Assembly: GCA_036785375.1 (NCBI GenBank) | Contig: JAWMAR010000070.1 | Span: forward strand, 7,006,001-7,070,000 | Direction of reading: 5' to 3' | Length of the DNA stretch: 64,000 bases | From: Leucoraja ocellata | Taxonomy: Eukaryota | Part shown: piece after piece, positions 5,175 through 38,139 of the stretch | Numbering within the stretch: the stretch's first letter is position 1 | How the letters are laid out: the number at the start of each line of letters is the position of its first letter | Made by a program: the position numbers and the translations under genes | Notes under the pieces: model-generated | Told to the model about the DNA's origin: nothing | What the model saw: the letters and a program-made list of their open reading frames with translations, nothing else | Databases searched by the model: none

Positions 5175-5969
5175 ATACAAGGATTGAACCCGCAGTGGTT
5201 TAGGTATCGTGAGGGGGAATTTGATGTACAGTCCAAAAATAAAGATTAGTTGTTCCAGTGCTTGACTCAGTGGTTTTTGACTGAACTAGACTGGAGGTAA
5301 GCTTGAGAAGAATGTATTTAATCCCACCCCCCCAGTACCACCCTCCTTCTCCCTCTACCCCTTCCCACTCTCTCTCTACCCCCTTTCTCTCTGCCTCTCT
5401 CCTTCTCTCCCCCTCCTCTCTATCTCTCTAGGTATTGAAGAGGGAGGGTGAAGAGTAGGAAGAGGGGATGCGGCGAAATGAGCCGCGCCTGCATAGTTGG
5501 GGGCAATGAGTGAGTGGTGGAACATAGTGTTGGGGAGCGGGTGAGTGGTGGAATATTGTGTTGGGGAATGGGTAAGTGGTGGAATATTGCGTTGGGGAGC
5601 AGACCCAATGGATCTGTACTTGGTCTGCACAGTAACTTTATATCACCAGTGGTGCAGTGTCCATCAGGGTTGTGTAGGGTTGTGGTGAGTGGCGTAGGGT
5701 TGTGGTTGGGGTTGTGCAGGCTGGTTCAACAACCTTGTGCTTGCTGGGAAGAAGCTGCTCTTGAACCTGGAGCTCACGGTTCTCAGGCTCCTTGTACCTT
5801 CCCCTCAGTAGTGGTGATAAGAGAGTGTGGCCAGGGTGGTGTGGGTCTATAGCTGGAAGACCGGGCTCCATACGGAGGTAAGAAAGCTCCTTGACAACCA
5901 CAATTGACACCCAACGAGGGTCAAAACTGGACTCTAATCAGCAGCCCTAACAATGCACGAGGGCAATGC

Positions 5970-6247
5970 AGGGGCGGTACAGTGGCGCAGCGGTAGAGTT
6001 GCTGCCTTACAGCGCTAGAGACCCGCCTTCGATGGTAACTACGGGCACTGTCTGTACAGTGTATGTACATTGTCCCTGTGACCATGTGGGTTTCCTCCGG
6101 GTGCTCTGGTTTCCTTTCAGATTACAAAGACGTGTAGATTTGTAGGTTAATTGGCTTCAGTAAATTGTCCCTAGTGTGTAGGTTAGAACTAGTGTAGGGG
6201 TGATCACTGGTTGGGTTAGACTCGGTGGGCCGAAGAGCCTGTTTCCA
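5970..6247 (+). mobile_element. tRNA-derived V-SINE (HE1-like); similar copies at about 21497, 28134, 34408, 44463, 46470, 47590 and on - at about 42520-42922 and 54090-54320
   Basis: Box A-like tggcgcagcggtag, box B-like ggttcgatcc in several copies, tgtgggtttcctccgggtgctc core, CR1-like tail ggccgaagggcctgtttcc. Confidence 0.7.
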
Positions 6248-6429
6248 TATCCTAACATATTCAGTTTTTCAGAGCCCCGCGCGATGTCGGGACCAGCTCC
6301 ACACAACTCCATACGGCTCCGGCGATCAAAGTGGGACCGGCCCCGCGAGGCCGTACGGCTCAAGTGACCACGTTAGGTCGCGCTTGCCGCATGGAGTCGC
6401 ATGCTCATGGGACAGGCCCTTTAATCCGG

Positions 6430-6542
6430 CGATGTTGCCCGTAGTGAGCAAAAGTTGCACAAAGTTCACACCCAACTCAATGCTGGCGTACAAAGAATCA
6501 CTCACACCGGCTGTCTTCAGGGCAGGCAGAAGAAAGTTTATT
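6430..6542 (-). terminator. Conserved polyadenylation cassette of the Ig family (copy 1)
   Basis: AATAAA on - at 6542-6537 followed by GT-rich gtgtgagtgattctttgt. The homologous cassette recurs downstream of copies 2, 3, 4 and 6 (AATAAA at 12698-12693, 22067-22062, 34854-34849, 61879-61874). Confidence 0.6.
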
Positions 6543-7307
6543 TAAATTAAACGTACATTTACCGGTGCAAGCAAGGTCAGTTCTCCTCACTGCATGCGAT
6601 CCACGCTCACACCTTCCACGCTGCTCATCTTTATACCTTTACTATTCCCTACTTAGTGTCAGAGTCAAACAATATGGAAACAGGCCCTTCCCCCAATACC
6701 ATGTGCTCTAATTTTGCCCATTAATCTCCTATGTGGGACCTTATCAAATACTTCCTGCAAGTCCAGGTACACTACATCCACTGGCTCTCCATTGTCCCCA
6801 GATCGTCTGACCACTAGTACATCAGGGAGATTGTTTGTGTTCTTCTTAGTGAAGACGGATCCAAAGTTTTTAGTCTATAAAGGTCCAATTTTAGTCTGAA
6901 CTAATTTTGCTAGTTATTTTTTAGTTATCTTCTGTTGCTCTTTAAAAGAGTTACCCAATCCCCTGGCTTTCCGCTCATCTTTGCAACGTTATACCTGTTC
7001 TCTTTTATTTTGATAGTGTCCCTGACTTCCCTTGTCAGCCACGGTCGCCCCTAACTCCCCATGGAATCTTCCTTCCTCTTTGGAATCCGGGTGCTCCGGT
7101 TTCGTCCCACACCCCAGAGACGTGCAGGTTTGTAGGTTAATTGGTCAGTGTAAATTGTATCTAGTGTGTGGGATAGAACTAGTATATGGGGTGATCACTG
7201 GTCCCCATTGACTCTGTGGGCCGAAGGGCTTGTTTCCCTGTTGTACCTCTGAACGGAACTAAACTAAACTAGACTTTGTTACTGACCCTGGGACTGGCCC
7301 TGCTGAA

Positions 7308-7844
7308 TCAGTGAGAGATCATCAGCTGCATCAATAATTCACAAACCGGTCTATCACTATAATGGAGCCAAACACAGGAATACGTCCCTGTATCTTCCTC
7401 TTTTACACCTGTCAGGAGCAACGTGGCGTCCTGTTCCCAAAGGACGTTTCGTTCCACGAACTTCCAGTGAACATGAGATCCCGTATAACGCGCATGCACT
7501 CTACTATGGAAATTGGCAATTGCAACACCATCTTTTTTCCATGTAACCATGGGACTATTGTCAACGTTGGATACTTTACATGGCAACATAACAGAACCAC
7601 CCAGAGATGCAACGAGCACCTTCTTGTTAATCGTTGATAGGTGATGACTGATGGCATCAGAATCTGACTTGTCCGTGCATCTTGGAAACCGTTCATCGGT
7701 GACTTGCCGAGGGGCCCGTGCGTTCCGCCCGGCCAAGTTTGCTTCCTCTCCCCATTCTCTGGAGATCGGACCTGTTCCAGTTGCGGAGACTTGCCACACC
7801 ATCTCCACAAGGACCATGAATCCTATCCATCTCTGCAGGCCCAT
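7308..7844 (-). CDS. Secreted single V-set Ig-domain protein, copy 1 (178 aa)
   Basis: ATG at 7844 lies 4 nt after an acceptor-like ttgtttcacccacag; the track's GTG start is intronic. Signal-like MGLQRWIGFMVLVEMVWQVSA, then RNARAPR/QV. V-set marks: GGSVMLPC, VTW 13 aa later, DATLLL, EEDTGTYSC (Cys-Cys spacing 68). Stop right after the G strand, no TM. Confidence 0.85.
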   Translation of the reverse strand: MGLQRWIGFMVLVEMVWQVSATGTGPISREWGEEANLAGRNARAPRQVTDERFPRCTDKSDSDAISHHLSTINKKVLVASLGGSVMLPCKVSNVDNSPMVTWKKDGVAIANFHSRVHARYTGSHVHWKFVERNVLWEQDATLLLTGVKEEDTGTYSCVWLHYSDRPVCELLMQLMISH

Positions 7845-8425
7845 GTTCCTGTGGGTGAAACAATGGGTCACCTTATTGCAACTCAGTAGGATTCATGATG
7901 GCATTCCCTGAACCCGCCCAGAGTTGGGGAATCGAGAACCAGAGGACATCGGTTTAAGGCGAGGGGGGGGGGAGAGATTTAATGTGAAACTGAGGGGTGA
8001 CTTTTTTACATAAAGGGTGGAGGGTGTTTGGAACGAGCTGCCGGAAGAGGTAGTTGGGGCAGGTACTATCACAATGATTAAGAAACAGTTAGACAGGTAC
8101 ATTGATAGGACAGGATTAGAGGGGTAAGGGCCAAACGCAGGCAGGTGGGTCTAGTATTGATGGGGACACGTTGGTGGGCGCGGGCAAGTTGGGCCAAAGG
8201 TCTCGCTGTGACTCTATGACTCCATCACTTGTCCCACCCTGGTCATTCCTCCTTCTCCCTGGTCCTGTCTAGCAGAAGGTACAGAAGCTTGAAAGCGCGC
8301 ACCACCAGACTCAGGAACAGCTTCTTCCCCTCTGCTATCAGGCTTCTGAACTGGGGGAACAGTGAACAGAGACAATCCCACCCCCATCACTCACAGACAC
8401 TTGAAGGATCCACAGGGTTGGTTAC

Positions 8426-8730
8426 CAGCTCCGGAGTCTCCACACAGGGTGACGGGGTCGGTCTTGTTCTCATCTCCTGCCATCGCTCGCTCCTTTTATA
8501 CCGACTCCCGGCTTCTCCTGCCCCTCATTGTCTGCCCTCACGTACATTCAACCAATCACTGCCTCCCACGGAGCATTGGCCGGAGTCAGCCGCGACCTCT
8601 CCACCCTCTGCCAAACGTGTCGTTGCATCAGCCGTTAACGTTTAACAAGAACAACGTCATCCCAGCTGCCAGCGGCCAACCAGGCGCCCCACACATCCTG
8701 CTTGTGTCTCCACCACGTCTCGTTCTGGTC
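8426..8730 (-). promoter_or_regulatory. Promoter and non-coding exon 1 of Ig copy 1
   Basis: TATAAAA on - at 8500-8494; CCAAT motifs at 8552-8556 (+) and 8579-8575 (-); donor CTG/GTAACC after 8426; matching acceptor at 7850-7849. The block is near-identical upstream of all six copies. Confidence 0.65.
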
Positions 8731-9105
8731 AACCCATCGCAGTTGAGGCAGAAACTATCCCAACGTTTAAGAAACAGCTATACAGGAACAGGTATAGGTC
8801 AGATTTGGAGGGAAATGGACCAAACGTGGACAGGTGGGACTAGTGTAGCTGGGACATGTTGTCCAATGTGGGCAAGTTGGGCCGAAGGGCCTGTTTCCAT
8901 GCTGTATCACTCTATAACTGTATTACACTATGACATTAAATCTTCTGCTTATCGAATCCACACACAAGATTAGTTGTTCAGCCAGAGCTGATCACACTTC
9001 TCGGCATCTGCATAAAATGGTGTCTGTCTTGTCGCGTCTTGTGCTGCTTGTTCGTGGTGGTGGAGAGATTGGTGTAAACGTGAAACATTAAATAAATAAT
9101 GATAA

Positions 9106-9460
9106 CTAGACCAAGTGGGACCCGTTGGGTCCCGTTCCCCCAACGTAATATTCCACCACTCACCCATACCCCACAATACTCACCCCACCCTCCCACAAGG
9201 AAAATTCTGGAAATGAAACCTCTCTCTTACTCCACCCCCCCACAATGAAACGGGGAGCCCCCGCCCCCAACCCACCCCTCCCCACAATCGTAATTATTTT
9301 ATAAATAAGGAGTAAATGAAACCTCTCAGCAATTCCACCCCCCACAATGAAAAGCCTCCTCCCAAGAAATCTAAATGAGATTCCTTTGCGATGTACCCGT
9401 CCCCCCAACGCAATTTTCCACCACTCACCCATACCCCACAACTGCGCAGGCGAGTCTCTT
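9106..9460 (-). mobile_element. Helitron-like 3' terminus (copies at 24709 and 30853); 5' extent undefined
   Basis: On -: hairpin GGGACCC-aac-GGGTCCC, 7-nt spacer, CTAG then T. Confidence 0.55.
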
Positions 9461-10602
9461 ACACTCCCTCCCCCTCGTCTTTACCCTCCTCCTTCTCTCC
9501 CCTCTCCTCCTCCACTCCCTCCATCACCTCTCCTTCCCTCTCATTTTTCCCTACCCTCAGTCACTGCCTCCCCTTTCACACTCCCCCACTAAACACAACG
9601 TTTAAATAACATTTCTTCTCCTCCACTCCCTGCCTCTACTTACAACAATGTAAGGAATCTCTCATTGCACTGGCTGGAACTTATCTCAACACTGTTGATT
9701 GGGAGCTGAGATCCCATTCTGATGTCATTGTCGGATCTACCCCCCCCCTTCCTCTCCCTCTATTCCCCCTCCTCTCCCACTCTCCCTCCTCACCTCCCCC
9801 ACTTTCCCCCCTCTTCCTCCCTACTCCCTTCTCTCCCCCAATCCCCCCCCCCCCCCCACCTCCTCACGCTGCCTTGTAACTAACAACCTCCAATCCAGGC
9901 ATCATTCTGGGATTCCTCTCCTGCACCCTCTCCAAACTCTTTGGGAAATTGGCTCCGGTTATCTCCCCTATCTATGCCTCTCATCTCTATATTGTTAAAA
10001 GTCTCATCTTGTGTATATGTATACGTGTGTGTGTTGTCTGTGTCTTTCTACCTTCATCAAAATGCCACGCATTAGCGCATTAGCTTTCACGCATTAGTAA
10101 TCGTATTAACCCCTTTGACAAAATAAACTGCTCCACTTCACATTACATGCTGTAGTTCACAAGTTATAGCGTTTTAAAAATAGTGAAAACCAACTTATTA
10201 AACGGCAAACCTTCACCCCGCTTCGAGTGATGTCACAAAGGGGGAGTGGTCGACCAGCAGCTTCCAGTGATGTCAGGGGGATGACCTCATTGAAATTAAC
10301 ATTCCGCTTTATCCGACCCGGCCTTCTACGCCCCACATGGAGTTTTTCGCGGCCATCAAAGAGGCGTCGAGACTGCAGCGGTGAAGGAGATATCGTGACC
10401 GCCATGGGCAGAAATCCTGGGGGGGGAACAGGGGACACGTCTCCCTATGCTTTGGGAGGTGGGGGACGATTCCCCCCCGCCCATGTTTTGTGTTCCGGAC
10501 TTTATCAGACGCTTTCTATGGGCAGAATCGTCCCGTTCGCGGGGCCTTTCAGCGCCCAAGCGGCTTAAAATCAAACTGCTGCATCGAGGCGATCGAGGCT
10601 CC

Positions 10603-12050
10603 CATAGAAACGTAGAAAATAGGTGCAGGAGTAGGGCATTCGGCCCTTCGAGCCTGCACTGCCATTTAATATGATTATACTGATCATCCAACTCAGTATG
10701 CCATAAAGTCCTGACATCCCAGGAATCAGTCTGGTGAGCCTTCTCTGTACTCCCTCTATGGCAAGAATGTCTTTCCTCAGATTAAGAGACCAAAACTGTA
10801 CGCAATACTCCAGGTGTGGTCTCACCAAGAGCATGTACAACTGCAGTAGAACCTCCCTGCTCCTATACTCAAATCCTTTTGCTATGAATGCTAACATACC
10901 ATTCGCCTTCTTCACTGCCTGCTGCACCTGCATGCCTACTTTTAATGACTGGTGTACCATGACACCCAGGTCTCGTTGCATCTCCCCCTTTCCTAATCGG
11001 CCACCATTCAGATAATAGTCTAATTTCCTGTTTTTGCCACCAAAATGGATAACCTCACATTTATCCACATTATACTGCATCTGCCATGCATTTGCCCACT
11101 CACCCAGCCTATCCAAGTCACCTTGAAGCCTCCTAGCATCCTCCTCACAGCTAACACTGCCCCCAGCTTTGTGTCATCCGCAAACTTGGAAATGTTGCAT
11201 ACAATTCCCTCGTCCAAATCATTAATATATACCGTAAATAGCTGGGGTCCCAGAACTGAGCCTTGCGGTACCCCACTAGTCACTGCCTGCCATTGTGAAA
11301 AGGACCCGTTTACTCCTACTCTTTGCTTCCTGTCTGCCAGCCAGTTCTCTATCCACATCAGTACTGAACCCCCAATACCATGTGCTTTAAGTTTGTATAC
11401 TAATCTCTTATGTGGGACCTTGTCGAAAGCCTTCTGAAAGTCCAGATATAACACATGCACTGGTTCTCCCCTATCCACGCTACTAGTTACATCCTCGAAA
11501 AATTCTATAAGATTCGTCAGACATGATTTACCTTTCGTAAATCCATGTTGACTTTGTCCAATGATTTCACCACTTTCCATATGTGCTGCTATCCCATCTT
11601 TAATAACTGACTCTAGCAGTTTCCCCACTACCGATGTTAGGCTAACTGGTCTGTAATTCCCCGTTTTCTCTCTCCCTCTCTTTTTAAAATGTGGTGTTAC
11701 ATTAGCTACCCTCCAATCCTCAGGAACTACTCCCAAATCTAAAGAGTTTTGAAAAATTATCACTAATGCATCCACTATTTCTGGGGCTACTTCCTTAAGT
11801 ACTCTGGGATACAACCTATCTGGCCCTGGGGATTTATCGGCTTTTAATTCATTCAATTTACCTACCACCACTTCCCGGCTAACCTGGATTTCACTCAGTT
11901 CCTCCATCTCATTTGACCTCCGGTCCCCTGCTATTTCCGGCAGATTATTTATGTCTTCCTTAGTGAAGACAGAACCAAAGTAGTTATTCAATTGGTCTGC
12001 CATGTCCTTGTTCCCCATGATCAATTCACTTGTTTCTGACTGCAAGGGAC
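10603..12050 (-). mobile_element. Chimeric CR1 (3' end of insertion CR1c fused to the CR1a body)
   Basis: Same 5' truncation point as 280-2083. The 3' end and left flank match the insertion at 15221. Junction at about 10700-10705. Confidence 0.85.
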
Positions 12051-13515
12051 CTGAAGGGCTTGGCCAAGCAGATACAAGGATTGAACCCGCAGTGGTTTAG
12101 GTATCGTGTAGGGGAATTTGATGTACAGTCCAAAAATAAAGATTAGTTGTAGAGTTGCTGCCTTACAGCGCTAGAGACCCGCCTTCGATGGTAACTACGG
12201 GCACTGTCTGTACAGTGTATGTACATTGTCCCTGTGACCATGTGGGTTTCCTCCGGGTGCTCTGGTTTCCTTTCAGATTGCAAAGACGTGTAGATTTGTA
12301 GGTTAATTGGCTTCAGTAAATTGTCCCTAGTGTGTAGGTTAGAACTAGTGTAGGGGTGATCACTGGTTGGGTTAGACTCGGTGGGCCGAAGAACCTGTTT
12401 CCATATCCTAACATATTCAGTTTTTCAGAGCTCCGCGCGATGTCGGGACCAGCTCCACACAACTCCATACGGCTCCGGCGATCAAAGTGGGACCGGCCCC
12501 GCGAGGCCGTACGGCTCAAGTGACCACGTTAGGTCGCGCTTGCCGCATGGAGTCGCATGCTCGTGGGACAGGCCCTTTAATCCGGCGATGTTGCCCGTAG
12601 TGAGCAAAAGTTGCACAAAGTTCACACCCAACTCAATGCTGGCGTACAAAGAATCACTCACACCGGCTGTCTTCAGGGCAGGCAGAAGAAAGTTTATTTA
12701 AATTAAACGTACATTTACCGGTGCAAGCAAGGTCAGTTCTCCTCACTGCATGCGATCCACGCTCACACCTTCCACGCTGCTCATCTTTATACCTTTACTA
12801 TTCCCTACTTAGTGTCAGAGTCAAACAATATGGAAACAGGCCCTTCCCCCAATACCATGTGCTCTAATTTTGCCCACTAATCTCCTATGTGGGACCTTAT
12901 CAAATACTTCCTGAAAGTCCAGGTACACTACATCCACTGGCTCTCCATTGTCCCCAGATCCTCTGACCACTAGTACATCAGGGAGATTGTTTGTGTTCTC
13001 CTTAGTGAAGACGGATCCAACGTTTTTAGTCTATAAAGGTCCAATTTTAGTCTGACCTAATTTTTTTCACATATCTAAAGAAGCTTTTACGATCCTCCTT
13101 TCTATTCTTGGCTATCTTACCTTCATACCTCATCTTTTCTCCCCGTATTGCTTTTTTAGTTATCTTCTGTTGCTCTTTAAAAGAGTTACCCAATCCCCTG
13201 GCTTTCCGCTCATCTTTGCAACGTTATACCTGTTCTCTTTTATTTTGATAGTGTCCCTGACTTCCCTTGTCAGCCACGGTCGCCCCTAACTCCCCTTGGA
13301 ATCTTCCTTCCGCTTTCATCCCACACCCCAGAGACGTGCAGGTTTGTAGGTTAATTGGTCAGTGTAAATTGTAGCTAGTGTGTGGGATAGAACTAGTACA
13401 TGGGGTGATCACTGGTCCCCGTTGACTCTGTGGGCCGAATGGCCTGTTTCCCTGAACTAAACTAAACTAAACTAAACTAGACTTTGCTACTAACTCTGGG
13501 ACGGGCCCTGCTGAA

Positions 13516-14052
13516 TCAGTAGATTTCAAAGACTGCCAGCGAGACGCATTCTTCACAAGTCCTATTATCTTGAGTGGTCCAGACACAGGTATATAACCCT
13601 TCATCTTTCTGTTCTACGCCTGCCAGGATCAACGAGGCGTCATGTATCACATGGATATCATTATGCTTGAAACGCCAGCGGCCCTCCGATCGCTTCGCTA
13701 TGTCAGGAGTTTTAAGACCATACCTGGCAATCGTAACATTGTATTTTCTCCAAATGACATTCAAGAGTTGATGGTATTCGCGGGATACTTTACAGGGCAG
13801 CGTAATGATACTACCCAGAGCTGCATCGAGCATATGCTCGCTAAATGATGCACCGTGATCACTGTCAGAATCTGACTCGTCCGTGCATCTTGGAAACCGT
13901 TCATTGGTGACTTGTCGAGGGGCCCGTGCGTTCCGCCCGGCCAAGTTTGCTTCCTCTCCCCATTCTCTGGAGATCGGACCTGTTCCAGTTGCGGAGACTT
14001 GCCACACCATCTCCACAAGGACCATGAATCCTATCCATCTCTGCAGTCCCAT
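13516..14052 (-). CDS. Secreted single V-set Ig-domain protein, copy 2 (178 aa)
   Basis: First 48 aa identical to copy 1. GSIITLPC...VIW...DASLILAGV..KDEGLYTC. Carries a fifth Cys (TCEEC). Confidence 0.85.
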   Translation of the reverse strand: MGLQRWIGFMVLVEMVWQVSATGTGPISREWGEEANLAGRNARAPRQVTNERFPRCTDESDSDSDHGASFSEHMLDAALGSIITLPCKVSREYHQLLNVIWRKYNVTIARYGLKTPDIAKRSEGRWRFKHNDIHVIHDASLILAGVEQKDEGLYTCVWTTQDNRTCEECVSLAVFEIY

Positions 14053-14634
14053 GTTCCTGTGGGTGAAACAATGGGTCACCTTATTGCAACTCAGTAGGAT
14101 TCATGATGGCATTCCCTGAACCCGCACAGAGTTGGGGAATCGAGAACCAGAGGACATCGGTTTAAGGCGAGGGGGGGGGGGAAAGATTTCATGGGAAACT
14201 GAGGGGTGACTTTTTTACACAAAGGGTGGAGGGTGTTTGGAACGAGCTGCCGGAAGAGGTAGTTGGGGCAGGTACTATCACAATGATTAAGAAACAGTTA
14301 GACAGGTACATTGATAGGACAGGATTAGAGGGGTAAGGGCCAAACGCAGGCAGGTGGGTCTAGTATTGATGGGGGCACGTTGGTGGGCGCGGGCAAGTTG
14401 GGCCGAAGGTCTCGCTGTGACTCTATGACTCCATCACTTGTCCCACCCCGGTCATTCCTCCTTCTCCCTGGTCCTGTCTAGCAGAAGGTACAGAAGCTTG
14501 AAAGCGCGCACCACCAGACTCAGGAACAGCTTCTTCCCCTCTGCTATCAGGCTTCTGAACTGGGGGAACAGTGAACAGAGACAATCCCACCCCCATCACT
14601 CACAGACACTTGAAGGATCCACAGGATTGGTTAC

Positions 14635-14940
14635 CAGCTCCGGAGTCTCCACACAGGGTGACGGGGTCGGTCTTGTTCTCATCTCCTGCCATCGCTCGCT
14701 CCTTTTATACCGACTCCCGGCTTCTCCTGCCCCTCATTGTCTGCCCTCACGTACATTCAACCAATCACTGCCTCCCACGGAGCATTGGCCGGAGTCAGCC
14801 GCGACCTCTCCACCCTCTGCCAAACGTGTCGTTGCATCAGCCGTTAACGTTTAACAAGAACAACGTCATCCCAGCTGCCAGCAGCCAACCAGGCGCACCA
14901 CACATCCTGCTTGTGTCTCCACCACGTCTCGTTCTGGTCA
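14635..14940 (-). promoter_or_regulatory. Promoter/exon 1 of Ig copy 2
   Basis: Same conserved block; TATAAAA on - at 14709-14703. Confidence 0.6.
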
Positions 14941-15220
14941 ACCCAGAGATCCGAGTTTTTCGCGGCCATCAAAGAGGCGTCGAGACTGCGGCGGTGAAGG
15001 AGATATCGTGACCGCAATGGGCAGAAATCCTGGGGGGGGGGGGAACAGGGGGCACGTCTCCCTATGCTTTGGGAGGTGGGGGACGATTCCCCCCCCGCCC
15101 ATGTTTTGTGTTCCGGACTTTATCAGACGCTTTCTATGGGCAGAATCGTCCCGTTCGCGGGGCCTTTCAGCGCCCAAGCGGCTTAAAATCAAACTGCTGC
15201 ATTGAGGCGATCGAGGCTCC

Positions 15221-15499
15221 CATAGAAACATAGAAAATAGGTGCAGGAGTAGGCCATTCAGCCTCCTAGCATCCTCCTCACAGCTAACACTGCCCCCCAG
15301 TTTCGTGTCATCCGCAAACTTGGAGATGTTGCATTCAACTCCCTCATCCAGATCATTAATATATATCGTAAATAGCTGGGGTCCCAGCACTGAGCCTTGC
15401 AGTACCCCACTAGTCACTGCCTGCCATTCTGAAAAGGACCCGTTTACTCCTACTCTTTGCTTTCTGTCTGCCAGCCAGTTCTCTATCCACATCAATACC
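15221..15499 (-). mobile_element. Short internally deleted CR1 (CR1c)
   Basis: CR1 tail plus RT fragment, inserted at gaggctccc/gatgttgaa; empty sites at about 26077 and 32333. Confidence 0.8.
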
Positions 15500-16169
15500 A
15501 ATGTTGAAACCCCCGCCGGGCGATGAAAGGCCCCGCGAACGGGCCGATTCAAGCCCCACGATTCCGGGCAGACGAAGCTGCTGTTGCTGGAGTTCGGAGT
15601 CGGTCACCAACCAAGTCAGCTCCCGATGTTACCGTCCACAGGGCCCACGGCCGAATCCTCGCGTGTGTGCCGCATGCACGCGTGTGCATGTGTGCCGCCA
15701 TGGAATTGTGCCCCACCATGTTTTGATACCGATTTCCATGCATGGAGATGACCTCCAATGAAGTGTAAATGCATGGTTGATTAGATTACTGTAACAGCAT
15801 TGTAAATATTGTATATAATGTGCCAGGCAGTTATCCTACTGTTTGTTGATTGGCTAAAGTGTTGAGCCCTGGCGGGTTTGTTTGAATTCCAGGGTAAATG
15901 TTGCATTATTCAAGTTAAGTTAGTATCTTCCAGAAGCTTCTCCTGAAACAATGTATGGGATCTGTTAGTGGTCTGGGGAACTGTCTATAATATACTGATG
16001 TAATTAATATGTTTGATTGGATTGTAAAGAGACCACCCCTATGTAGTTCGGCCCCTCAAGGTTCGGGGACTTATAAAAGGCAGCCCCCACGAGGTCCTTT
16101 GTCGATCTTCTGGAAGAATCCTTGGGACAGCGTGACCTTTTGGAGTGTTTCTGCTTGCACGAGGCTGAA

Positions 16170-19100
16170 CATAGAAACATAGAAACATAGCTAATAGGTG
16201 CAGGAGTAGGCCATTCGGCCCTTCGAGCCTGCACCGCCATTCAATATGATCATGGCAGATCATCCAACTCAGTATCCTGTAACTGCGTTCTCTCCATACC
16301 ACCTGATCCATTTAGCCACAAGGGCCACATCTAACTCCCTCTTAAATATAGCCAATGAACTGGCTTCAACTACCTTCTGCGGCAGAGAATTCCAGAGATT
16401 CACCACTCTCTGTGTGAAAAAAGTTGTCCTCATCTCGGCCCCAAAAGACTTCCTCTTATCCTTAAACTGTGACCCCTTGTTCTGGACTTCCCGAACATCG
16501 GGAACAATTTTCCTGCATCTAGCTGTCCAACCCCTTAAGAATTTGTAAGTTTCTATAAGATCCCCCCTCAATCTTCTAAATTCTAGCGAGTACAAACCGA
16601 GTCTATCCAGTCTTTCGTCATATGAAAGTCCTGACATCGCAGGAATCAGTCTGGTGAGCCTTCTCTGTACTCCCTCTATAGCAAGAATGTCTTTCCTCAG
16701 ATTAAGAGACCAAAACTGTACGCAATACTCCAGGTGTGGTCTCACCAAGAGCATGTACAACTGCAGTAGAACCTCCCTGCTCCTATACTCAAATCCTTTT
16801 GCTATGAATGCTAACATACCATTCGCCTTCTTCACTGCCTGCTGCACCTGCATGCCTACTTTTAATGTTTAAGAGGGAACTGCAGATGCTGGAGAATCGA
16901 AGGTTACACAGAAAAGCTGGAGAAACTCAGCGGGTGCAGCAGCATCTATGGAGCGAAGGAAAAAGGCAACGTTTCGGGCCGAAACCCTTCTTCAGACTGA
17001 TCAGGGTGGGGGTGGGTGGGGACAAGAAAGGGGAAAAGGAGAGTCGCCGGAAGGCTGGAGGGTGGGAGGAGAAGGCTGGAGGGTGGGAGGAGACACCAGG
17101 GAGCTGAGGAAGGGGAGGAGACAGCAAGGACTAACAGAATTGGGAGAAGTCGATGTTCATGCCCCCGGGGTGCAGACTCCCCAAACGGAATATGAGGTGC
17201 TGTTCCTCCAATTTCCGGTGCTGCTCGCTGTGGCCATGGAGGAGACCCAGGACAGAGAGGTCGGAGGCGAGTGGGAGGGGAGTTGAAGTGCTGAGCCACC
17301 GGGAGGTCAGCTAGGTTATTGCGGACCGAGCGGAGGTGTTCGGCGAAACGATCGCCCAACCTCCGCTTGGTCTCACTGATATAGATCTGCTGACATCTAG
17401 AGCAGCGGACGCAATAGATGAGGTTGGAAGAGATGCAGGTAAACCTCTGTCGCACCTGGAACGATTGCTTGGGTCCCTGAACGGAGTTGAGGGGGGAGGT
17501 AAAGGGACAAGTGTTGCATCTCCTGCGGCCGCAAGGGAAAGTGCCCGGGGAGGGGGTGGACCGAGAGGGAAGGGAAGAATTGACAAGGGAGTTATGGAGG
17601 GAGCGGTCTTTGCGGAAGGCAGATATGGGGGGAGATGGGAAGATGTGGCTAGTAGTGGGGTCACGTTGGAGGTGGCGAAACTGACGGAGGATTATTTTTG
17701 TATGTGATGGCTGGTGGGGTGAAAGGTGAGGACTAGGGGGACTCGGCCCTTGTTGCGAGTGCGGGGATGGGGAGAGAGAGCAGTGTTGCGGGGTATGGAA
17801 GAGACCCTGGTGCGAGCCTCATTATGGTGGAGGAGGGGAACCCCCGTTCCCTGAATAGTGAGGACATTTCAGATGTCCTGGTGTGGAACGCCTCATCCGT
17901 GGAGCAGATGCGGCGTAGACGGAGGAATTGGGAGTAGGGGATGGAGTCCTTACAGGAAGCAGGGTGGGAAGAAGTGTAGTCCAGATAGCCATGGGAGTCA
18001 GTGGGTTTATAGTGTATGTCGGTTATAAGTCTATCACCTGCAATGGAGATAGTGAGGTCAAGGAATGGTAGGGAAGTGTCGGAGATGGTCCAGGTGTATT
18101 TCAGTGCCGGGTGGAAATTAGTGGTGAAGTGGATGAAGTCAGTCAGTTGTGTGCGGGTGCAGGAGGTGGCACCAAAGCAGTCGTCGATGTAGCGGAGGTA
18201 GAGGTTGGGGATGGGGCCCTGGTATGTATTGAACAAGGATTGCTCGACGTAACCTACAAATAGGCAGGCATAGCTGGGCCCATGCGTGTGCCCATAGCTA
18301 CGCCTTGTATTTGGAGGAAGTGGGAGGAGTCGAACTCGAAGTTATTGAGGGTAAGGACCAGCTCCGCTAGGCGGAGGAGAGTGTCAGTGGCTGGGTATGG
18401 GTTGCTTCTCTGGTCGAGGAAGAACCGGAGGGCTGTGAGACCATCGTAGTGGGGGATGGAGGTGTATAGTGATTGGACGTCCATGGTGAAGATGAGGGGG
18501 TGAGGGCCTAGAGAATTGAATGCGCGGAGACGACGGAGAGTGTCTGAGGTGTCTTGGACATAGGTAGGAGGGATTTAACCAAGGGTGATAGGATGGAGTC
18601 AAGGTATTTGGAAATGAGTTCGGTGGGGCACGAACAGGCGGAGACAATGGGTCTTCCGGGACAATCAGGTTTGTGGATTTTAGGGAGAAGGTAAAATCGG
18701 GCTGTGCGGGGCTGGGGAACGATGAGGTTGGAGGCTCGGTCGGGTAGGGCATTGGAGTGGATGAAGTTGGTGATGGTGCTGGAGATGGTGGCCTGGTGCT
18801 CGTCAGTGGGGTCATGGTCCAGGGGTAAGTAGGAGGAGGTGTCCGATAGTTGGCGCGTGGCCTCAGCTTTGTAGGTTTACCTGCATCTCTTCCAACCTCA
18901 TCTATTGCGTCCGCTGCTCTAGATGTCAGCAGATCTATATCGGTGAGACCAAGCGGAGGTTGGGCGATCGTTTCGCCGAACACCTCCGCTCGGTCCGCAA
19001 TAACCTAGCTGACCTCCCGGTGGCTCAGCACTTCAACTCCCCCTCCCACTCCGCCTCCGACCTCTCTGTCCTGGGTCTCCTCCATGGCCACAGCGAGCAG

Positions 19101-20528
19101 CACCGGAAATTGGAGGAACAGCACCTCATATTCCGTTTGGGGAGTCTGCACCCCGGGGGCATGAACATCGACTTCTCCCAATTCTGTTAGTCCTTGCTGT
19201 CTCCTCCCCTTCCTCAGCTCCCCTGGTGTCTCCTCCCACCCTCCAGCCTTCTCCTCCCACCCTCCAGCCTTCCGGCTACTCCTCCTTTTCCCTTTCTTGT
19301 CCCCACCCACCCCCACCCCTGATCAGTCTGAAGAAGGGTTTCGGCCCAAAACGTTGCCTATTTCCTTCGCTCCATAGATGCTGCTGCACCCGCTGAGTTT
19401 CTCCAGCTTTTCTGTGTAACCTGCCTACTTTTAATGACTGGTGTACCATGACACCCAGGTCTCGTTGCATCTCCCCCTTTCCTAATCGGCCACCATTCAG
19501 ATAATAGTCTAATTTCCTGTTTTGCCACCAAAGTGGATAACCTCACATTTATCCACATTATACTGCATCTGCCATGCATTTGCCCACTCACCCAGCCTAT
19601 CCAAGTCACCTTGCAGCCTCCTAGCATCCTACTCAGAGCTAACACTGCCCCCAGCTTTGTGTCATCCGCAAACTTGGAGATGTTGCATTCAATTCCCTCG
19701 TCCAAATCATTAATATATACCGTAAATAGCTGGGGTCCCAGAACTGAGCCTCGAGGTACCCCACTAGTCACTGCCTGCCATTGTGAAAAGGACCCGTTTA
19801 CTCCTACTCTTTGCTTCCTGTCTGCCAGCCAGTTCTCTATCCACATCAGTACTGAACCCCCAATACCGTGTGCTTTAAGTTTGTATACTAATCTCTTATG
19901 TGGGACCTTGTCGAAAGCCTTCTGAAAGTCCAGATATAACACATCCACTGGTTCTCCCCTATCCACGCTACTAGTTACATCCTCGAAAAATTCTATAAGA
20001 TTTGTCAGACATGATTTACCCTTCATAAATCCATGCTGACCTTGTCCAATGATTTCACCACTTTCCAAATGTGCTACTATCCCATCTTTAATAACTGATT
20101 CTAGCAGTTTCCCCACTACCGACGTTAGACTAACTGGTCTGTAATTCCCCATTTTCTCTTTTTAAAATGTGGTGTTACATTAGCTACCCTCCAATCCTCA
20201 GGAACTACTCCCAAATCTAAAGAGTTTTGAAAAATTATCACTAATGCATCCACTATTTCTGGGGCTACTTCCTTAAGTACTCTGGGATACAACCTATCTG
20301 GCCCTGGGGATTTATCGGCTTTTAATTCATTCAATTTACCTACCACCACTTCCCGGCTAACCTGGGTTTCACTCAGTTCCTCCATCTCATTTGACCCCCG
20401 GTCCCCTGCTATTTCCGGCAGATTATTTATGTCTTCCTTAGTGAAGACGGAACCAAAGTAGTTATTCAATTGGTCTGCCATGTCCTTGTTCCCCATGATC
20501 AATTCACTTGTTTCTGACTGCAAGGGAC
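16170..20528 (-). mobile_element. CR1a duplicate interrupted by a Penelope-like element
   Basis: Same termini and CTGAA duplication as 280-2083. Confidence 0.9.
16868..19421 (-). mobile_element. Penelope-like retroelement with inverted pseudo-LTR
   Basis: RT motifs MDVQSLYTSIPH, QGVAMGTRMGP, YLRYIDDCF; GIY-YIG NLIYCVRC...YIGETKRRLGDRFAEH; inverted copy of its 3' end at about 18873-19421; 15-bp TSD tgcctacttttaatg at 16853-16867 and 19422-19436. Confidence 0.92.
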
Positions 20529-22910
20529 CTGAAGGGCTTGGCCAAGCAGATACAAGGATTGAACCCGCAGTGGTTTAGGTATCGTGTAGGGGAATTTGGA
20601 ATTTGATGTACAGCACAAAAATAAAGTTTAGTTGTTCCAGTGCTTGACTCAGTGGTTTTTGACTGAACTAGACTGGGGGTAAGCTTGAGAAGAATGTATT
20701 TAATCCCTCCCCCCCCCCCACTACCACCCTCCTTCTCCCTCTACCCCTTCCCACTCTCTCTCTACCTCCTTTCTCTCTGCCTCTCTCCTTCACTCCCCCT
20801 CCTCTCTCCCTCTAAGTATTGAAGAGGGAGGGTGAAGAGTAGGAAGAGGGGATGCGGCGAAATGAGCCGCGCCTCCAGAGTTGGGGGCTATGAGTGAGTG
20901 GTGGAATATTGCGTTGGGGAACGGGGTGAGTGGTGGAATATTGCGTTGGGGAATGGGTGAGTGGTGGAATATTGCGTTGGGTTTGTACTTGGTCTGCACA
21001 GTAACTTTATATAATTCTATCAGGTCTATGGGCGGCTCTGTAGTGGCAGCCCTCCACTGTCTACCCTGGCCTATCATGATTATATACTTACACCATAAGT
21101 ACACAATAAGGTCTCAGTTATTCCAAGTAAACCAGACCATGATAGTACAAGACAACGTACGTGGGGCATCACCAGTGGTGCAGTGTCCATCAGGGTTGTG
21201 TAGGGTTGTGGTGAGTGGCGTAGGGTTGTGGTTGGGGTTGTGCAGGCTGGTTCAACAACCTTGTGCTTGCTGGGAAGAAGCTGCTCTTGAACCTGGAGCT
21301 CACGGTTCTCAGGCTCCTGTACCTTCCCCTCAGTAGTGGTGATAAGAGAGTGTGGCCAGGGTGGTGTGGGTCTATAACTGGAAGACCAGGCTCCATACGG
21401 AGGTAAGAAAGCTCCTTGACAACCACAATTGACACCCAACGAGGGTCAAAACTGGACTCTAATCAGCAGCCCTAACAATGCACGAGGGCAATGCAGGGGC
21501 GGTACAGTGGCGCAGCGGTAGAGTTGCTGCCTTACAGCGCTAGAGACCCGCCTTCGATGGTAACTACGGGCACTGTCTGTACAGTGTATGTACATTGTCC
21601 CTGTGACCATGTGGGTTTCCTCCGGGTGCTCTGGTTTCCTTTCAGATTACAAAGACGTGTAGATTTGTAGGTTAATTGGCTTCAGTAAATTGTCCCTAGT
21701 GTGTAGGTTAGAACTAGTGTAGGGGTGATCACTGGTTGGGTTAGACTCGGTGGGCCGAAGAACCTGTTTCCATATCCTAACATATTCAGTTTTTCAGAGC
21801 CCCGCGCGATGTCGGGACCAGCTCCACACAACTCCATACGGCTCCGGCGATCAAAGTGGGACCGGCCCCGCGAGGCCGTACGGCTCAAGTGACCACGTTA
21901 GGTCGCGCTTGCCGCATGGAGTCGCATGCTCGTGGGACTGGCCCTTTAATCCGGCGATGTTGCCCGTAGTGAGCAAAAGTTGCACAAAGTTCACACCCAA
22001 CTCAATGCTGGCGTACAAAGAATCACTCACACCGGCTGTCTTCAGGGCAGGCAGAAGAAAGTTTATTTAAATTAAACGTACATTTACCGGTGCAAGCAAG
22101 GTCAGTTCTCCTCACTGCATGCGGTCCACGCTCACACCTTCCACGCTGCTCATCTTTATACCTTTACTATTCCCTACTTAGTGTCAGAGTCAAACAATAT
22201 GGAAACAGGCCCTTCCCCCAATACCATGTGCTCTAATTTTGCCCATTAATCTCCTATGTGGGACCTTATCAAATACTTCCTGCAAGTCCAGGTACACTAC
22301 ATCCACTGGCTCTCCGTTGTCCCCAGATCCTCTGACCACTAGTACATCAGGGAGATTGTTTGTGTTCTCCTTAGTGAAGACGGATCCAAAGTTTTTAGTT
22401 TATAAAGGACCAATTTTAGTCTGAACTAATTTTTTTCACATATCTAAAGAAGCTTTTACGATCCTCCTTTCTATTCTTGGCTATCTTACCTTCATACCTC
22501 ATCTTTTCTCCCCGTATTGCTTTTTTAGTTATCTTCTGTTGCTCTTTAAAAGAGTTACCTAATCCCCTGGCTTTCCGCTCATCTTTGCAACGTTATACCT
22601 GTTCTCTTTTATTTTGATAGTGTCCCTGACTTCCCTTGTCAGCCACAGTCGCCCCTAACTCCCCTTGGAATCTTCCTTCCTCTTTGGAATCCGGGTGCTC
22701 CGGTTTCGTCCCACACCCCAGAGACGTGCAGGTTTGTAGGTTAATTGGTCAGTGTAAATTGTATCTAGTGTGTGGGATAGAACTAGTATATGGGGTGATC
22801 ACTGGTCCCCATTGACTCTGTGGCCGAAGGGCTTGTTTCCCTGTTGTACCTCTGAACGGAACTAAACTAAACTAGACTTTGTTACTGACCCTGGGACTGG
22901 CCCTGCTGAA

Positions 22911-23447
22911 TCAGTGAGAGATCATCAGCTGCATCAATAATTCACAAAACGGTCTATATGGATACTTGATCCAAACACAGGAATACGTCCCTTTATCTTC
23001 CTCTTTTACACCTGTCAGGAGCAACGTGGCGTCCTGATTCCTAATGACGTCTCGTTGCACGAACCTCCAGTGAACATCAGATCCGTAATAAAACGCTAAC
23101 GCTCTCTCATGGAAATGGGCAATTTGAACACCATCTTTATTCCATGTAACCGTGGGACTATTGTCAACGTTGGATACATTACATGGCAACGTAACAGAAC
23201 CACCCAGAGATGCAACGAGCACCTTCTTGTTAATCGTTGATAGGTGATGACTGATGGCATCAGAATCTGACTTGTCCGTGCATCTTGGAAGCGTTTCATT
23301 GGTGACCTGTCGAGGGGCCCGTGCGTTCCGCCCGGCCAAGTTTGCTTCCTCTCCCCATTCTCTGGAGGTCGGACCTGTTCCAGTTGCGGAGACTTGCCAC
23401 ACCATCTCCACAAGGACCATGAATCCTATCCATCTCTGCAGTCCCAT
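22911..23447 (-). CDS. Secreted single V-set Ig-domain protein, copy 3 (178 aa), closest to copy 1
   Basis: Collinear with copy 1 without indels, 28 aa differences. GGSVTLPC...VTW...DATLLL..EEDKGTYSC. Confidence 0.85.
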   Translation of the reverse strand: MGLQRWIGFMVLVEMVWQVSATGTGPTSREWGEEANLAGRNARAPRQVTNETLPRCTDKSDSDAISHHLSTINKKVLVASLGGSVTLPCNVSNVDNSPTVTWNKDGVQIAHFHERALAFYYGSDVHWRFVQRDVIRNQDATLLLTGVKEEDKGTYSCVWIKYPYRPFCELLMQLMISH

Positions 23448-24028
23448 GTTCCTGTGGGTGAAACAATGGGTCACCTTATTGCAACTCAGTAGGATTCATG
23501 ATGACATTTCCTGAACCCGCCCAGAGTTGGGGAATCGAGAACCAGAGGACATCGGTTTAAGGCGAGGGGGGGGGGAAAGATTTAATGGAAAACTGAGGGG
23601 TGACTTTTTTACACAAAGGGTGGAGGGTGTTTGGAACGAGCTGCCGGAAGAGGTAGTTGAGGCAGGTACTATCACAATGATTAAGAAACAGTTAGACAGG
23701 TACATTGATAGGACAGGATTAGAGGGGTAAGGGCCAAACGCAGGCAGGTGGGTCTAGTATTGATGGGGACACGTTGGTGGGCGCGGGCAAGTTGGGCCGA
23801 AGGTCTCGCTGTGACTCTATGACTCCATCACTTGTCCCACCCCGGTCATTCCTCCTTCTCCCTGGTCCTGTCTAGCAGAAGGTACAGAAGCTTGAAAGCG
23901 CGCACCACCAGACTCAGGAACAGCTTCTTCCCCTCTGCTATCAGGCTTCTGAACTGGGGGAACAGTGAACAGAGACAATCCCACCCCCATCACTCACAGA
24001 CACTTGAAGGATCCACAGGGTTGGTTAC

Positions 24029-36088: not shown

Positions 36089-38139
36089 TGAGGAAATATT
36101 ATATAAATAGAACCGTTTGGATAGTGATTTTTATATAAGCTAGGTAATTTGCAAAAGAAAATCTTAGGGTTTTCCTGGTGAAATAAAGTGCAGACAGATA
36201 CACACAGGCAAAGATGAATCAAAACATTGAGGCCTGAACCTGAACCTGTTTAGCTTAGGTTTATTGCTGAGGCAATTATAACACTGGAGGAAATTGTATT
36301 TGGTATGATTGTGTTGGAAAATAGATAACTGAATACGGGCTTCTTCTTAGGTCAGATTCACTTTTCTTTGTGGACATTCTTGAGCTGTGGGGTTTGTGCT
36401 GAGTTTGAGATATAGTTCAGGGCTGAGAGATAATAGGCCCTGTAGTTAGCTTTGGCTAGGTTGAATTAGGATGTATGTGAAGGGGAGTCGTTGCTTGGAG
36501 AAGATCATTTGTAATATTTGTAAAAGGCCTTGTAGAGAGATTGGAAATCCAGCTCCCAGAGATAGCAGGAGAAGGGGAGGCTGTAAGTTAAGATGTATGA
36601 AGTATGTAAGTTAAGTGAATGAAGCTGTATCCTGGAACCAAACACTAATTAAGTAAGTTGACAGATTTACGACCCATGTATCCTTGGTTGGGATGGGTAT
36701 AGGTTTTGAACTTAGAAACTGTAATTCAGCAAACTTATACAGGTGCACAACCTTTTATCCGGTGTTCCGGAAACCGAAAAACTCCGAAAACCGGCCATTT
36801 TTTCCAGATGTCGTCTGCACACCAAAGCTCGCGTTTGGCGCCAAACTTGACCCGAAACGACGCACGGTCAACCCAGGTCTGTACTACTGCAGCGGCTGCC
36901 TCCTCCCCGGAGACCGGGAGACGCTTAAACATCTGTAAATCATTGCTTAAATGTTAGTCAGTTAGTTTGGAGGGCTTTTATGTGAAGGGGGGGGGTGAAG
37001 GGGTAAACTTTAATTCTTAGTCCCCTCCCTGGTCGGAGAGGCGGGGAGCGGTCAATGCCTTACCGGGTTGCCGTGCGGCAAGCTCCGCAGCGCTGTGGCT
37101 GGTGAAGCTGCGGGCGTCGCCGGTTGTAGCTCCGACCCCGGCAACTCTACCCCTGGCTGCGAGGCGCTCCAAATCCAGCGCGGCCCGCGGCCGGACGCCC
37201 CAGCTCCGCGAATGTTGGAGCATCGCTGGATTTGGAGCCGCGCAGCCAGGGGTAGAGTTGCCGGGGTCGGAGCTACAACCGGCACCGCCCGCGGCCGGAC
37301 GGAGCCCCCAGCTCCGCGAGGTTGGGAGTCGCCGACCAGGTAGGGGACTAAGAATTAAAGTTTCCCCCTTCACCCCTACTCCACCACCACCACATAAAAT
37401 CCCTCCAAACTAACTGACTAACATTTATGCAATGATTCTCCCGGTCTCCGGGGACGAGGCAGCTGCTCCAGACTTTTCAAGCCGCCCGCGCTACCTACCT
37501 AATCTACGCTAAAAATCTTCCATTCGGAAATCCGAAAATGTCCGAAATCTGACAAGTGTCTGGTCCCAAGGCTTTCGGATAAAAGGTTGTGCACCTGTAT
37601 AATTAATGTTTTAAAGACCTAGGTAAAAGTATTTCAAACTGTGAAATTGTAGTAAAACAAATTATGAAATGTATTGCCTTAGTAGAAATGTACACTTTAG
37701 ACATAGAAATTGTTTAGATTTATAGAAATATCTTTCTTCTTGGTATAGAAAGTGTGTATGACTTGTGTGATCATTGTCTGTATCTTATATTTTGAGGAGT
37801 GGTCCTTGATAAGAGCCTACTGGGGTTTTGCTGTGTTGAAATAAAATAATTCTGAAACAAAGTTATAAAGTTATACCATAGACAAACGAAGATTGTAAAA
37901 AGAAGGACTCAGCTGATTGGTTACTAGCTTGTCATACCCTCTGTATCTGAAATGTCTAATACCTATATAAATGCCATGAGTTTGTATCAAAGTTACTCCT
38001 CTCTGGACCCGCCCCAGAGCATCAGCTCTGTGTTGGAAGGTTCAAGAGACTAGTCTCAGTTGAATAAAGAATTGATTTTAACAGCAACAAGTGTTTGAGT
38101 CAAGTTGACTTTAGATTGGCAGAAGAACTCAGTTTAACA
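36089..38139 (+). mobile_element. Solo LTR containing a MITE
   Basis: TG...CA termini, 4-bp CCCC duplication (36085-36088 and 38140-38143), TATATAA at 37964, AATAAA at 38063. Confidence 0.75.
36740..37597. mobile_element. Tc1/mariner-type MITE with fold-back interior
   Basis: 22-bp TIR caggtgcacaaccttttatccg, TA on both sides, nested internal inverted repeats. Confidence 0.85.

Follow-up and report, generated by a model that had tools for sequence, protein, structure and literature searches.

Six V-set genes in tandem

We analyzed a stretch of 64,000 nucleotides from the skate Leucoraja ocellata (GenBank assembly GCA_036785375.1, contig JAWMAR010000070.1, positions 7,006,001 to 7,070,000 of the forward strand), referred to below as the window, in which six intact genes with a common leader, here c1 to c6, lie on the minus strand. 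Each encodes a short protein with one V-set immunoglobulin (Ig) domain. A preliminary description had proposed that two of these genes, c1 and c3, diverged under positive selection, and our results support that proposal, as the ratio of nonsynonymous to synonymous divergence (dN/dS, or omega) of the pair is significantly above 1 and no donor for the differences is present in the window. All coordinates given below count from the first letter of the window.

The open reading frame (ORF) of c1 spans 7308–7871 and its start codon (MGLQRW) lies at 7844, which gives a coding sequence at 7308–7844 of 178 codons plus the stop at 7310–7308. Exon 2 (7308–7848, acceptor AG at 7850–7849) is preceded by a 546-nt intron (7849–8394) that runs from GTGAGT to CCCACAG and is chiefly a high-copy interspersed repeat. 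Exon 1 and the core promoter together occupy 8395–8570, with the end of exon 1 at 8395, a TATAAAA box at 8500–8494 and an inverted endoplasmic reticulum (ER)-stress element (ERSE) at 8570–8552. The 3' flank (6917–7307) is largely high-copy repeat, carries AATAAA at 7009–7004, about 298 nt past the stop, and is collinear with the c3 flank with only 3 mismatches in 390 bases. The 178-residue precursor consists of a signal-like segment (residues 1–21), a conserved 'pro' segment (22–46) that ends in RAPR and, starting at Q47 (7706 downward), a mature V-set domain, so that the mature domain is encoded by codons 47–178 at 7311–7706 (Pfam V-set, 8.1e-10). The nearest paralogue of c1 within the window is c3. 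Its ORF spans 22911–23474 and, from a start codon (MGLQRW) at 23447, its coding sequence (22911–23447) likewise has 178 codons plus stop; exon 2 (22911–23451) is in the same register as that of c1 at an offset of 15603, and the 178-residue precursor matches Pfam V-set at 3.4e-11. The equal length of the two genes, with no insertion or deletion between them, was confirmed from the ORF list and the start codons.

The other four genes are c2 (13516–14052, 178 codons), c4 (38536–39108, 190 codons, with an additional C-terminal tail), c5 (58992–59507, 171 codons) and c6 (62273–62788, 171 codons), the last being of the c5 subtype (dS between c5 and c6 0.42). Two of them have a close counterpart in L. 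erinacea: c4 is near LOC129708937 (P0002), and the mature part of c5 has 1 difference from LOC129708945 (P0005) in 125 compared residues, with R5K in the leader besides.

All six copies share the same order of elements: inverted ERSE, TATAAAA, exon 1, intron, acceptor and ATG. The ERSE is a perfect inverted copy (CGTGG-N9-ATTGG) 70 nt upstream of the TATAAAA box in all six promoters; such an element is more typical of ER chaperone genes and is unusual in a secreted effector gene. In every copy exon 1 is short and ends in TGTCT followed by GTGAGT, the intron is about 546 nt (longer in c6), and the acceptor CCCACAG is followed by GAAC, which places the ATG four bases into exon 2. That exon encodes the entire protein from MGLQ onward, the stop falls 10–24 codons past the G-strand cysteine with no additional Pfam domain, and a polyadenylation signal follows 66–393 nt past the stop (all in six of six copies). 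The L. erinacea NCBI models P0001, P0002 and P0004–P0007 start instead at an ATG in exon 1 (8483, i.e. 8481–8483, in c1), which adds 31 residues ahead of the signal peptide. In view of the fact that this ATG lies only 11 nt past the TATA box, it is probably upstream of the transcription start. The model from Rhinoraja begins at MGLQ, the start adopted here, and the NCBI models of the reference skate are, judged from the sequence, likely too long at the N-terminus.

Codon differences between c1 and c3

The coding sequences of c1 and c3 differ at 44 of 537 bases, with a ratio of transitions to transversions (ts:tv) of 15:29. Counted by script, the 31 changed codons comprise 28 nonsynonymous and 3 purely synonymous ones (G2, R46 and Q47), and all 27 changed codons past Q47 alter the amino acid, exactly as had been counted by hand; the peptide stretches quoted at that time are also present as written. 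Codons changed at two or three bases, previously put at about ten, number nine (52, 108, 114, 117, 119, 121, 137, 161 and 163). The variable codons of the mature domain are 50, 52, 53, 86, 90, 99, 103, 108, 111, 114, 116, 117, 119, 121, 124, 128, 131, 133, 135–137, 152, 160, 161, 163, 164 and 167. Adjacent bases are changed together in seven runs (three of two bases, three of three and one of four).

The non-coding DNA around the two genes is nearly identical, as first described: 42 of 3388 aligned bases differ (1.24%), compared with 41 of 396 (10.4%) in the mature exon (Fisher p=1.3e-19), and dN between c1 and c3 is ten times the flank divergence. The substitution spectrum flips as well, from a ts:tv of 30:12 in the non-coding flanks (5642–7307 and 7845–9576) to 13:28 in the mature exon (7311–7706). 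None of the 51 fourfold sites differs, and the synonymous sites thus behave like the flanks. Among mature codons hit only once, 18 of 19 changes are nonsynonymous. When 41 random hits were placed on the mature exon in a Monte Carlo analysis (20,000 simulations for each transition/transversion rate ratio, kappa), 7.5–9.8 codons with only synonymous change were expected and 1 was observed; the probability of one or fewer was 0.003 at the kappa of the exon and 0.0003 at that of the flanks, which excludes chance. A null confined to the same codons gave P=0.37 and is uninformative, since hot codons seldom stay synonymous.

Tests for positive selection

Significance of an omega above 1 for c1 and c3, on which the earlier proposal depended, was obtained with the pairwise GY94 model (F3x4 codon frequencies; omega 9.06, likelihood-ratio test [LRT] 8.19, p=0.0042), and equal codon frequencies gave a similar result (omega 8.2, p=0.0047). 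On the tree of all six copies, a branch test assigned the c1 and c3 terminal branches an omega of 7.1 (p=0.0018 versus 1), which rose to 27 (p=0.0006) when only the ungapped Ig core was used. The c3 branch carries most of the change, with 0.27–0.32 substitutions per codon versus 0.05–0.07 on c1.

Codon analyses were confined to the six window copies, the relatives from L. erinacea and Rhinoraja being used as proteins only, and were run with our own implementation of the codon models, whose log-likelihood under M0 equals that of IQ-TREE (-2273.389). For the mature domain of the six copies, M0 gave an omega of 1.34 (p=0.03 versus 1). The comparison of M1a with M2a gave an LRT of 44.0 (p=2.8e-10), with 27% of sites at an omega of 4.7 (about 4.8), and the comparison of M7 with M8, which had been named as a check of the earlier claim, gave an LRT of 45.3 (p~1e-10); that of M8a with M8 was 43.8. 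One beta parameter was at its bound in M7 and M8, an issue of which M1a and M2a, with the same LRT, are free. The M1a/M2a signal persisted when only ungapped core columns were used (LRT 32.9) and when either member of the pair was masked (LRT 25.4 with c3 masked, 28.7 with c1 masked). Eighteen sites had an M2a posterior above 0.8, including 111, 114, 116, 117, 119, 124, 136, 152, 161–163, 166 and 167. The leader and pro codons, which served as a control, showed no selection signal (M0 omega 0.5; LRT 1.7, p=0.43), and their tree length was 0.37 versus about 6.7 for the mature part.

Location of the variable sites on the V fold

To place the variable codons, we used strand assignments from an AlphaFold (AF2) model of mature c1, which has a mean predicted local distance difference test score of 75, with most of the Ig core at 70–90 and the first 23 residues unreliable. 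The model has the V-type strand order, C' and C'' included; in precursor numbering the strands are A' 74–80, B 84–87, C 99–104, C' 107–113, C'' 117–120, D 127–129, E 142–145, F 153–161 and G 165–177. Codons that vary between c1 and c3 fall in strand B (86), the B-C loop (90), strand C (99 and 103), strand C' (108 and 111), the C'-C'' loop (114 and 116), strand C'' (117 and 119), the segment after C'' (121 and 124), strand D (128), the D-E region (within 131–137), the E-F region (152), the end of F (160 and 161), the F-G loop (163 and 164) and the start of G (167). Strands A' and E, the main part of F, and G past 167 are free of c1/c3 differences. The clustering first noted by eye in C-C'-C''-D and F-G, equivalent to complementarity-determining regions (CDR) 2 and 3, therefore holds on the AlphaFold model, and to this placement the model adds the D-E ('HV4-like') region and a few C-strand positions.

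The best folds found by Foldseek in the PDB were the first domains of CD155, nectin-1, -2 and -4, TIGIT, CD96 and CAR (expectation values of 1e-8 to 5e-7, TM scores of 0.6–0.7, 18–29% identity), and among solved single V domains those of nectin/PVR/TIGIT/CAR also gave the best match in sequence. V domains of the nectin/PVR/TIGIT type bind through their C-C'-C''-F-G side. By analogy with them, we infer that the variable face of the skate protein is its ligand-binding face.

Homogenised flanks around old V cores

All 15 pairs of copies are 97–100% identical over a 5' module of about 1 kb that runs from the promoter through exon 1 and the intron to the leader and pro codons; the exception is a dissimilar insert in c6. 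In c4, c5 and c6 the likeness breaks down within a few codons of Q47, and in c2 it does so at about codon 64. On the 3' side, c1, c2 and c3 share a flank at 93–100% identity. The six genes are a family under concerted evolution. The leader is conserved in Rhinoraja too, which indicates that purifying selection also acts on it.

Within the mature domains the picture is reversed, as mature dS is 0.39–1.01 and pairwise omega 0.63–1.37 in 14 of the 15 pairs. Given such high V-domain dS between homogenised flanks, the V cores are old lineages set in recently homogenised DNA, and c1/c3 is the one young pair. The Ig core of c2 has 34% amino acid identity to that of c1 and about 50–70% nucleotide identity (dS 0.39 versus c1, range 0.39–0.47). 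It forms a sharply bounded island of divergence within 13152–14945, with c1-like flanks on both sides (93–100%); divergence sets in near codon 64 on the 5' side and ends within about 100 nt past the stop on the 3' side.

Because conversion from another paralogue would have undermined the original proposal, all 14-mers of c3 that span a variant were searched for in the rest of the 64-kb window, and none recurs, so no paralogue in the window was the donor. Eleven 14-mers of c1 recur, matching c2 or c4, and mark ancestral states. The segment VTWKKDGVAIA, common to c1 and c4, has 4 synonymous differences in its 11 codons and thus does not represent a recent tract. Conversion from a diverged donor would have introduced synonymous differences; their absence counts against conversion for c1 and c3.

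Recurrent change at the same codons in other sequences

In P0001, the closest L. erinacea protein, 13 of the 27 sites that vary between c1 and c3 carry a third residue, compared with differences at only 11 of the 105 invariant sites (odds ratio 7.9, p=4e-5). Contigs from sequencing run X1 hold a c1-like V exon with 13 listed base differences within 7351–7550, in 10 codons (99, 103, 108, 111, 152, 160, 161, 163, 164 and 165), all of them nonsynonymous; this tally is of the listed differences, three additional ones in a second contig being unclassified and one gap unplaced. Nine of these ten codons also vary between c1 and c3, and five carry a third residue. None of 8 substitutions in the same X1 contig falls in its 130 bases of 3' untranslated region. 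The preliminary description had named consensus errors as a possible source of the differences, and both the X1 contigs and P0001 vary at the same codons; that the changes respect codons and include no indel also argues against such errors.

Two further DNA runs, X3 and X7, hold the conserved 5' module, while the c1 V exon (7348–7667) was covered not at all or in patches at 90% likeness. This suggests presence/absence variation, or strongly diverged alleles, between samples or species.

Protein features, relatives and surrounding DNA

The mature part is 125–144 residues long across the six copies, and all six domains match the Pfam V-set model (PF07686) at 31.8–43.8 bits against a cutoff of 26. 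Across the 13 family proteins compared, C89, W102, D151, Y155 and C157 never vary, which supplies the V-set core triad and the D-x-G-x-Y-x-C motif; two additional cysteines, C56 and C168, are equally invariant. Five of the six copies have RAPR or REPR before QV, the minimal RxxR form of a furin-type motif, at which cleavage of the pro-peptide is hypothetical. Codons 44–48 of c4 (38965–38979) read RAYWQ instead of RAPRQ or REPRQ, and its relative P0002 reads RSYWH; with RAYW in c4, the proposed convertase site is not universal in the family.

No CACAGTG or CACTGTG heptamer and no full V(D)J-type recombination signal sequence (RSS) was found within 400 nt past the stop in any of the six copies, nor was a J-type FGxG motif found in the G strands, which read C-E-L-L-M-Q-L and similar. 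As judged by RSS and FGxG, the skate genes are not rearranging antigen-receptor V genes.

A search of 5.8 billion proteins, covering those of 0.55–1.75 times the query length (fusions would escape it), returned as close relatives only models labelled 'uncharacterized protein', six from Leucoraja erinacea and one from Rhinoraja longicauda. As far as these sequences go, the family is unnamed, restricted to skates and seen in two skate genera only. The strongest remote profile matches were P0008, P0010 and P0012, proteins of 1500–2070 residues with 8–15 tandem V domains (with LLPCYF, GNASL and DxGDYxC motifs), with sushi domains in P0008 and P0012 and a long simple repeat in P0010. We considered whether such giant multi-Ig proteins belong to the same family and rejected this, as the five inspected are multi-V proteins, some with sushi domains; they top the profile list because scores add up over many domains. 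A search of the ESM Atlas returned generic V-set clusters only. In the literature we found nothing on this skate family, subscription journals and supplements being outside the scope of the search, and a search for RNA runs containing the gene turned up none.

The intergenic and flanking DNA of the window is repeat-rich and of vertebrate type, with reverse-transcriptase ORFs of long interspersed nuclear elements (LINEs) and very high-copy interspersed repeats. LINE-type reverse-transcriptase ORF fragments lie between the Ig genes at 1053–2078, 2710–4176, 19358–20152 and 35387–36091, and units at 24–38 kb are repeated flank modules without an Ig exon. Around c1, interspersed repeats occupy the 3' flank (6900–7283), most intron sequence (7860–8371) and the region upstream of the promoter (8692–8800); in three DNA runs the words of these repeats are hundreds to thousands of times deeper than those of unique sequence. 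Low-copy DNA there is limited to exon 2 and some 320 nt of promoter and exon 1 (8372–8691). The sole N runs in the window are at 55062–56049 and 56490–56807, and the ORFs listed across them are meaningless.

A model of the family and its alternatives

We consider it probable that the six genes are a tandem family in which concerted evolution of the 5' module is combined with diversifying selection on the V domain. According to this model, each two-exon gene would give rise to a small secreted protein made of a signal peptide, a conserved stretch of 25 residues and one V-set Ig domain, the last carrying an additional cysteine pair that would link the N-terminus to the G strand; secretion is predicted from the sequence. 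Gene conversion or unequal crossing-over would keep the 5' module of about 1 kb alike, and the V domain would escape homogenisation and be subject to diversifying selection at roughly a quarter of its codons, concentrated on the C-C'-C'' strands and loop, the D-E region and the F-G hairpin. The youngest pair, c1 and c3 (1.2% neutral divergence), would have acquired some 40 base changes in the mature domain since their split or their last whole-exon conversion, essentially all of them altering amino acids (omega about 9). The driver would be an arms race, either host–pathogen or reproductive. Our reading is that the product would be a secreted recognition or decoy protein and that the host–pathogen setting is the more likely of the two, an opinion based on the nectin/PVR-like fold and on the parallels to VCBPs and SITRs discussed below.

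Several observations weigh against this model. The NG86 method gave a weaker result for c1 and c3 (dN 0.131, dS 0.047, omega 2.76, Fisher p=0.047), which we attribute to the method's distribution of multiply hit codons over pathways that include synonymous steps. In four codons all three bases have changed during 1.2% of neutral time, which implies an omega of tens at the hot sites and is more readily explained by some motifs being older and imported. Recombination inflates the LRTs of site models, and the family clearly recombines in its flanks while the site models ignore recombination; these models also rest on six sequences only, with some long branches. Recurrence at the selected codons is not universal, as c4 and its near-identical reference protein (P0002) differ at 1 of 18 inferred selected sites versus 9 of 126 elsewhere, and the enrichment at inferred sites is weak for c3 versus P0001 (p=0.1). 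The exact c1 V exon was absent from the four runs examined, which leaves the c1 and c3 sequences of the window without independent confirmation. Lastly, in a single-cell RNA run of which about 1 in 100 reads were sampled, no read fell on exon 2 or exon 1, all falling on interspersed repeats, a result that says nothing firm about expression.

The alternative to be taken most seriously, though we think it rather unlikely, is that old hypervariable motifs have been swapped by short conversion tracts among many A-type paralogues or alleles of a larger cluster, with the framework and synonymous sites homogenised along with the flanks, so that the tenfold rate would be an artefact of homogenisation; selection would even so keep the motifs apart. 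The demonstrable homogenisation of the flanks fits this explanation, as does the mosaic pattern in which 7 of the c3 differences occur in P0001 too and others are common to c1 and P0001. The clustering of differences in runs of 2–4 adjacent bases, the four codons changed at all three bases and the reversed ts:tv (13:28 in the exon versus 30:12 in the flanks) would also be expected from it. Against it stands the lack of any variant-spanning c3 14-mer elsewhere in the window, and the segment shared by c1 and c4 is, with its 4 synonymous differences, no recent tract. The old V core of c2 retains diverged synonymous sites (dS 0.39–0.47), which indicates that homogenisation normally leaves the synonymous sites inside the V domain uncleaned. 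In addition, many sites have three residues in three sequences, which mosaics of two donors do not explain.

A bolder reading, which we regard as improbable, is that the near-identical stretches are working homology arms by which V cores or patches are swapped among the tandem genes, in the germline or somatically, giving a combinatorial repertoire of secreted single-V proteins through templated exchange and not through RAG. Every copy has the 5' arm, and c1, c2 and c3 have the 3' arm as well. The runs of 2–4 bases, the reversed ts:tv and the three-residue sites would then be footprints of the exchange, a reading to which we give the same low credence.

We think it very unlikely that c1 and c3 are haplotypes of one locus placed in tandem by the assembler, in which case the signal would reflect balancing selection. 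The non-coding divergence of just 1.24% across collinear kilobases is of the kind expected from haplotypes, and the absence of most of the c1 V exon from X3 and X7 means that the content of the locus differs between samples, the exact exon being in no run examined. However, 15.6 kb separates the two units, and the interval contains another gene (c2) and LINE fragments; the only N runs (55062–56807) are not nearby, and the annotation of the reference skate has several distinct linked genes; even if the explanation were true, dN far above dS would stand.

Slightly less likely again is a locally raised mutation rate (for example by deaminase-type targeting) or relaxed constraint, without positive selection. 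The tandem multi-base changes and the excess of transversions might be taken as mutational, and omega is near 1 for most old pairs (0.63–1.37). A raised rate would have changed the synonymous sites too, yet 0 of 51 fourfold sites were changed and synonymous-only codons numbered 1 against the 7.5–9.8 expected, and WRC/GYW hotspots hold 9 of the 41 differences versus 50 of 396 positions, which is no clear excess. Relaxed constraint, for its part, cannot give a dN ten times the flank divergence, and it is at odds with six intact ORFs and a core of Cys, Trp, DA-L and D-G-Y-C that is invariant in 13 of 13 proteins.

Assembly or consensus errors, for which a repeat-rich, multi-copy region and the failure to find the exact c1 exon in four runs might be cited, deserve almost no credence, given 44 substitutions that are codon-structured, with no indel and no stop, and independent-run contigs and a reference protein that vary at the same codons with other residues.

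Comparison with known systems

The VCBPs are, as outlined in PMC2632668 and PMC4757023, secreted, germline-encoded and non-rearranging V-type Ig proteins with clustered, highly polymorphic genes. The skate genes are likewise clustered, V-type and non-rearranging, and their products are predicted to be secreted. A VCBP, however, has two tandem V domains along with a chitin-binding domain, while the skate protein has one V domain and no chitin-binding match, and no sequence relation to VCBPs past the V-set itself was found. Teleost SITRs form a secreted Ig-superfamily multigene family without a transmembrane part that is implicated in the response to a parasite, and they have two Ig domains with a CD300-like V (both as sketched in PMC3031540), compared with one V domain in the skate; no specific similarity of the skate proteins to SITRs was found. 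The nectin and PVR proteins are membrane proteins of V-C2-C2 architecture with a transmembrane segment. With a single V domain and a stop right after the G strand, the skate proteins are not members of that group and resemble its first domain in fold only; they also carry the additional cysteine pair C56/C168, unlike the nectin/PVR/TIGIT/CAR V domains.

In the arrangement of conserved and variable parts, a likeness exists to the prepro genes of conotoxins and antimicrobial peptides, which like the skate genes have an invariant leader and pro part and a hypervariable mature part with conserved cysteines. An excess of transversions in the variable part, as in the skate exon (ts:tv 13:28, with 30:12 in the flanks), has been reported for conopeptides. 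The mature product there is a short knotted peptide, whereas in the skate it is an Ig domain of 130 residues, and the skate conservation reaches promoter and intron DNA, which points to homogenisation of the DNA as well as purifying selection. Hypervariability of the loops with preserved cysteine codons is a feature of conotoxins in the account of PMC3823881.

A likeness to major histocompatibility complex (MHC) genes is that the skate copies resemble one another more in flanks and introns than in coding sequence, with an excess of nonsynonymous change at putative contact positions. In the MHC, introns are homogenised and the exons for the binding site diversified. The comparison there is between alleles of a peptide-presenting receptor, and here it is between tandem paralogues of a (predicted) secreted protein. 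That conversion and selection jointly shape gene families is a theme of two reviews (PMC3966226 and PMC3924837). As such, the kind of evolution seen here is well known, and the skate family itself is, as far as we searched, undescribed in print.

Significance for skate biology

Among living lineages with antibodies, the cartilaginous fish are the oldest, and to our knowledge their non-rearranging Ig-type defence and recognition molecules are poorly known. The c1/c3 comparison gives one of the strongest signals of diversifying selection obtainable from two genes: an exposed face of a V domain changes about ten times faster than the neighbouring neutral DNA, and the same codons are altered repeatedly in other copies. 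The locus also offers a clear natural case in which a single exon is sharply divided between conversion and selection, and the variable positions amount to a short list of codons for testing. The signal points to a specific, fast-moving partner. This may be the surface of a pathogen or an adhesin, a virus for which nectin-type molecules serve as receptors, or a protein of the gametes or reproductive tract. If the improbable exchange of V cores between homology arms were true, skates would have a humoral recognition system beside their antibodies.

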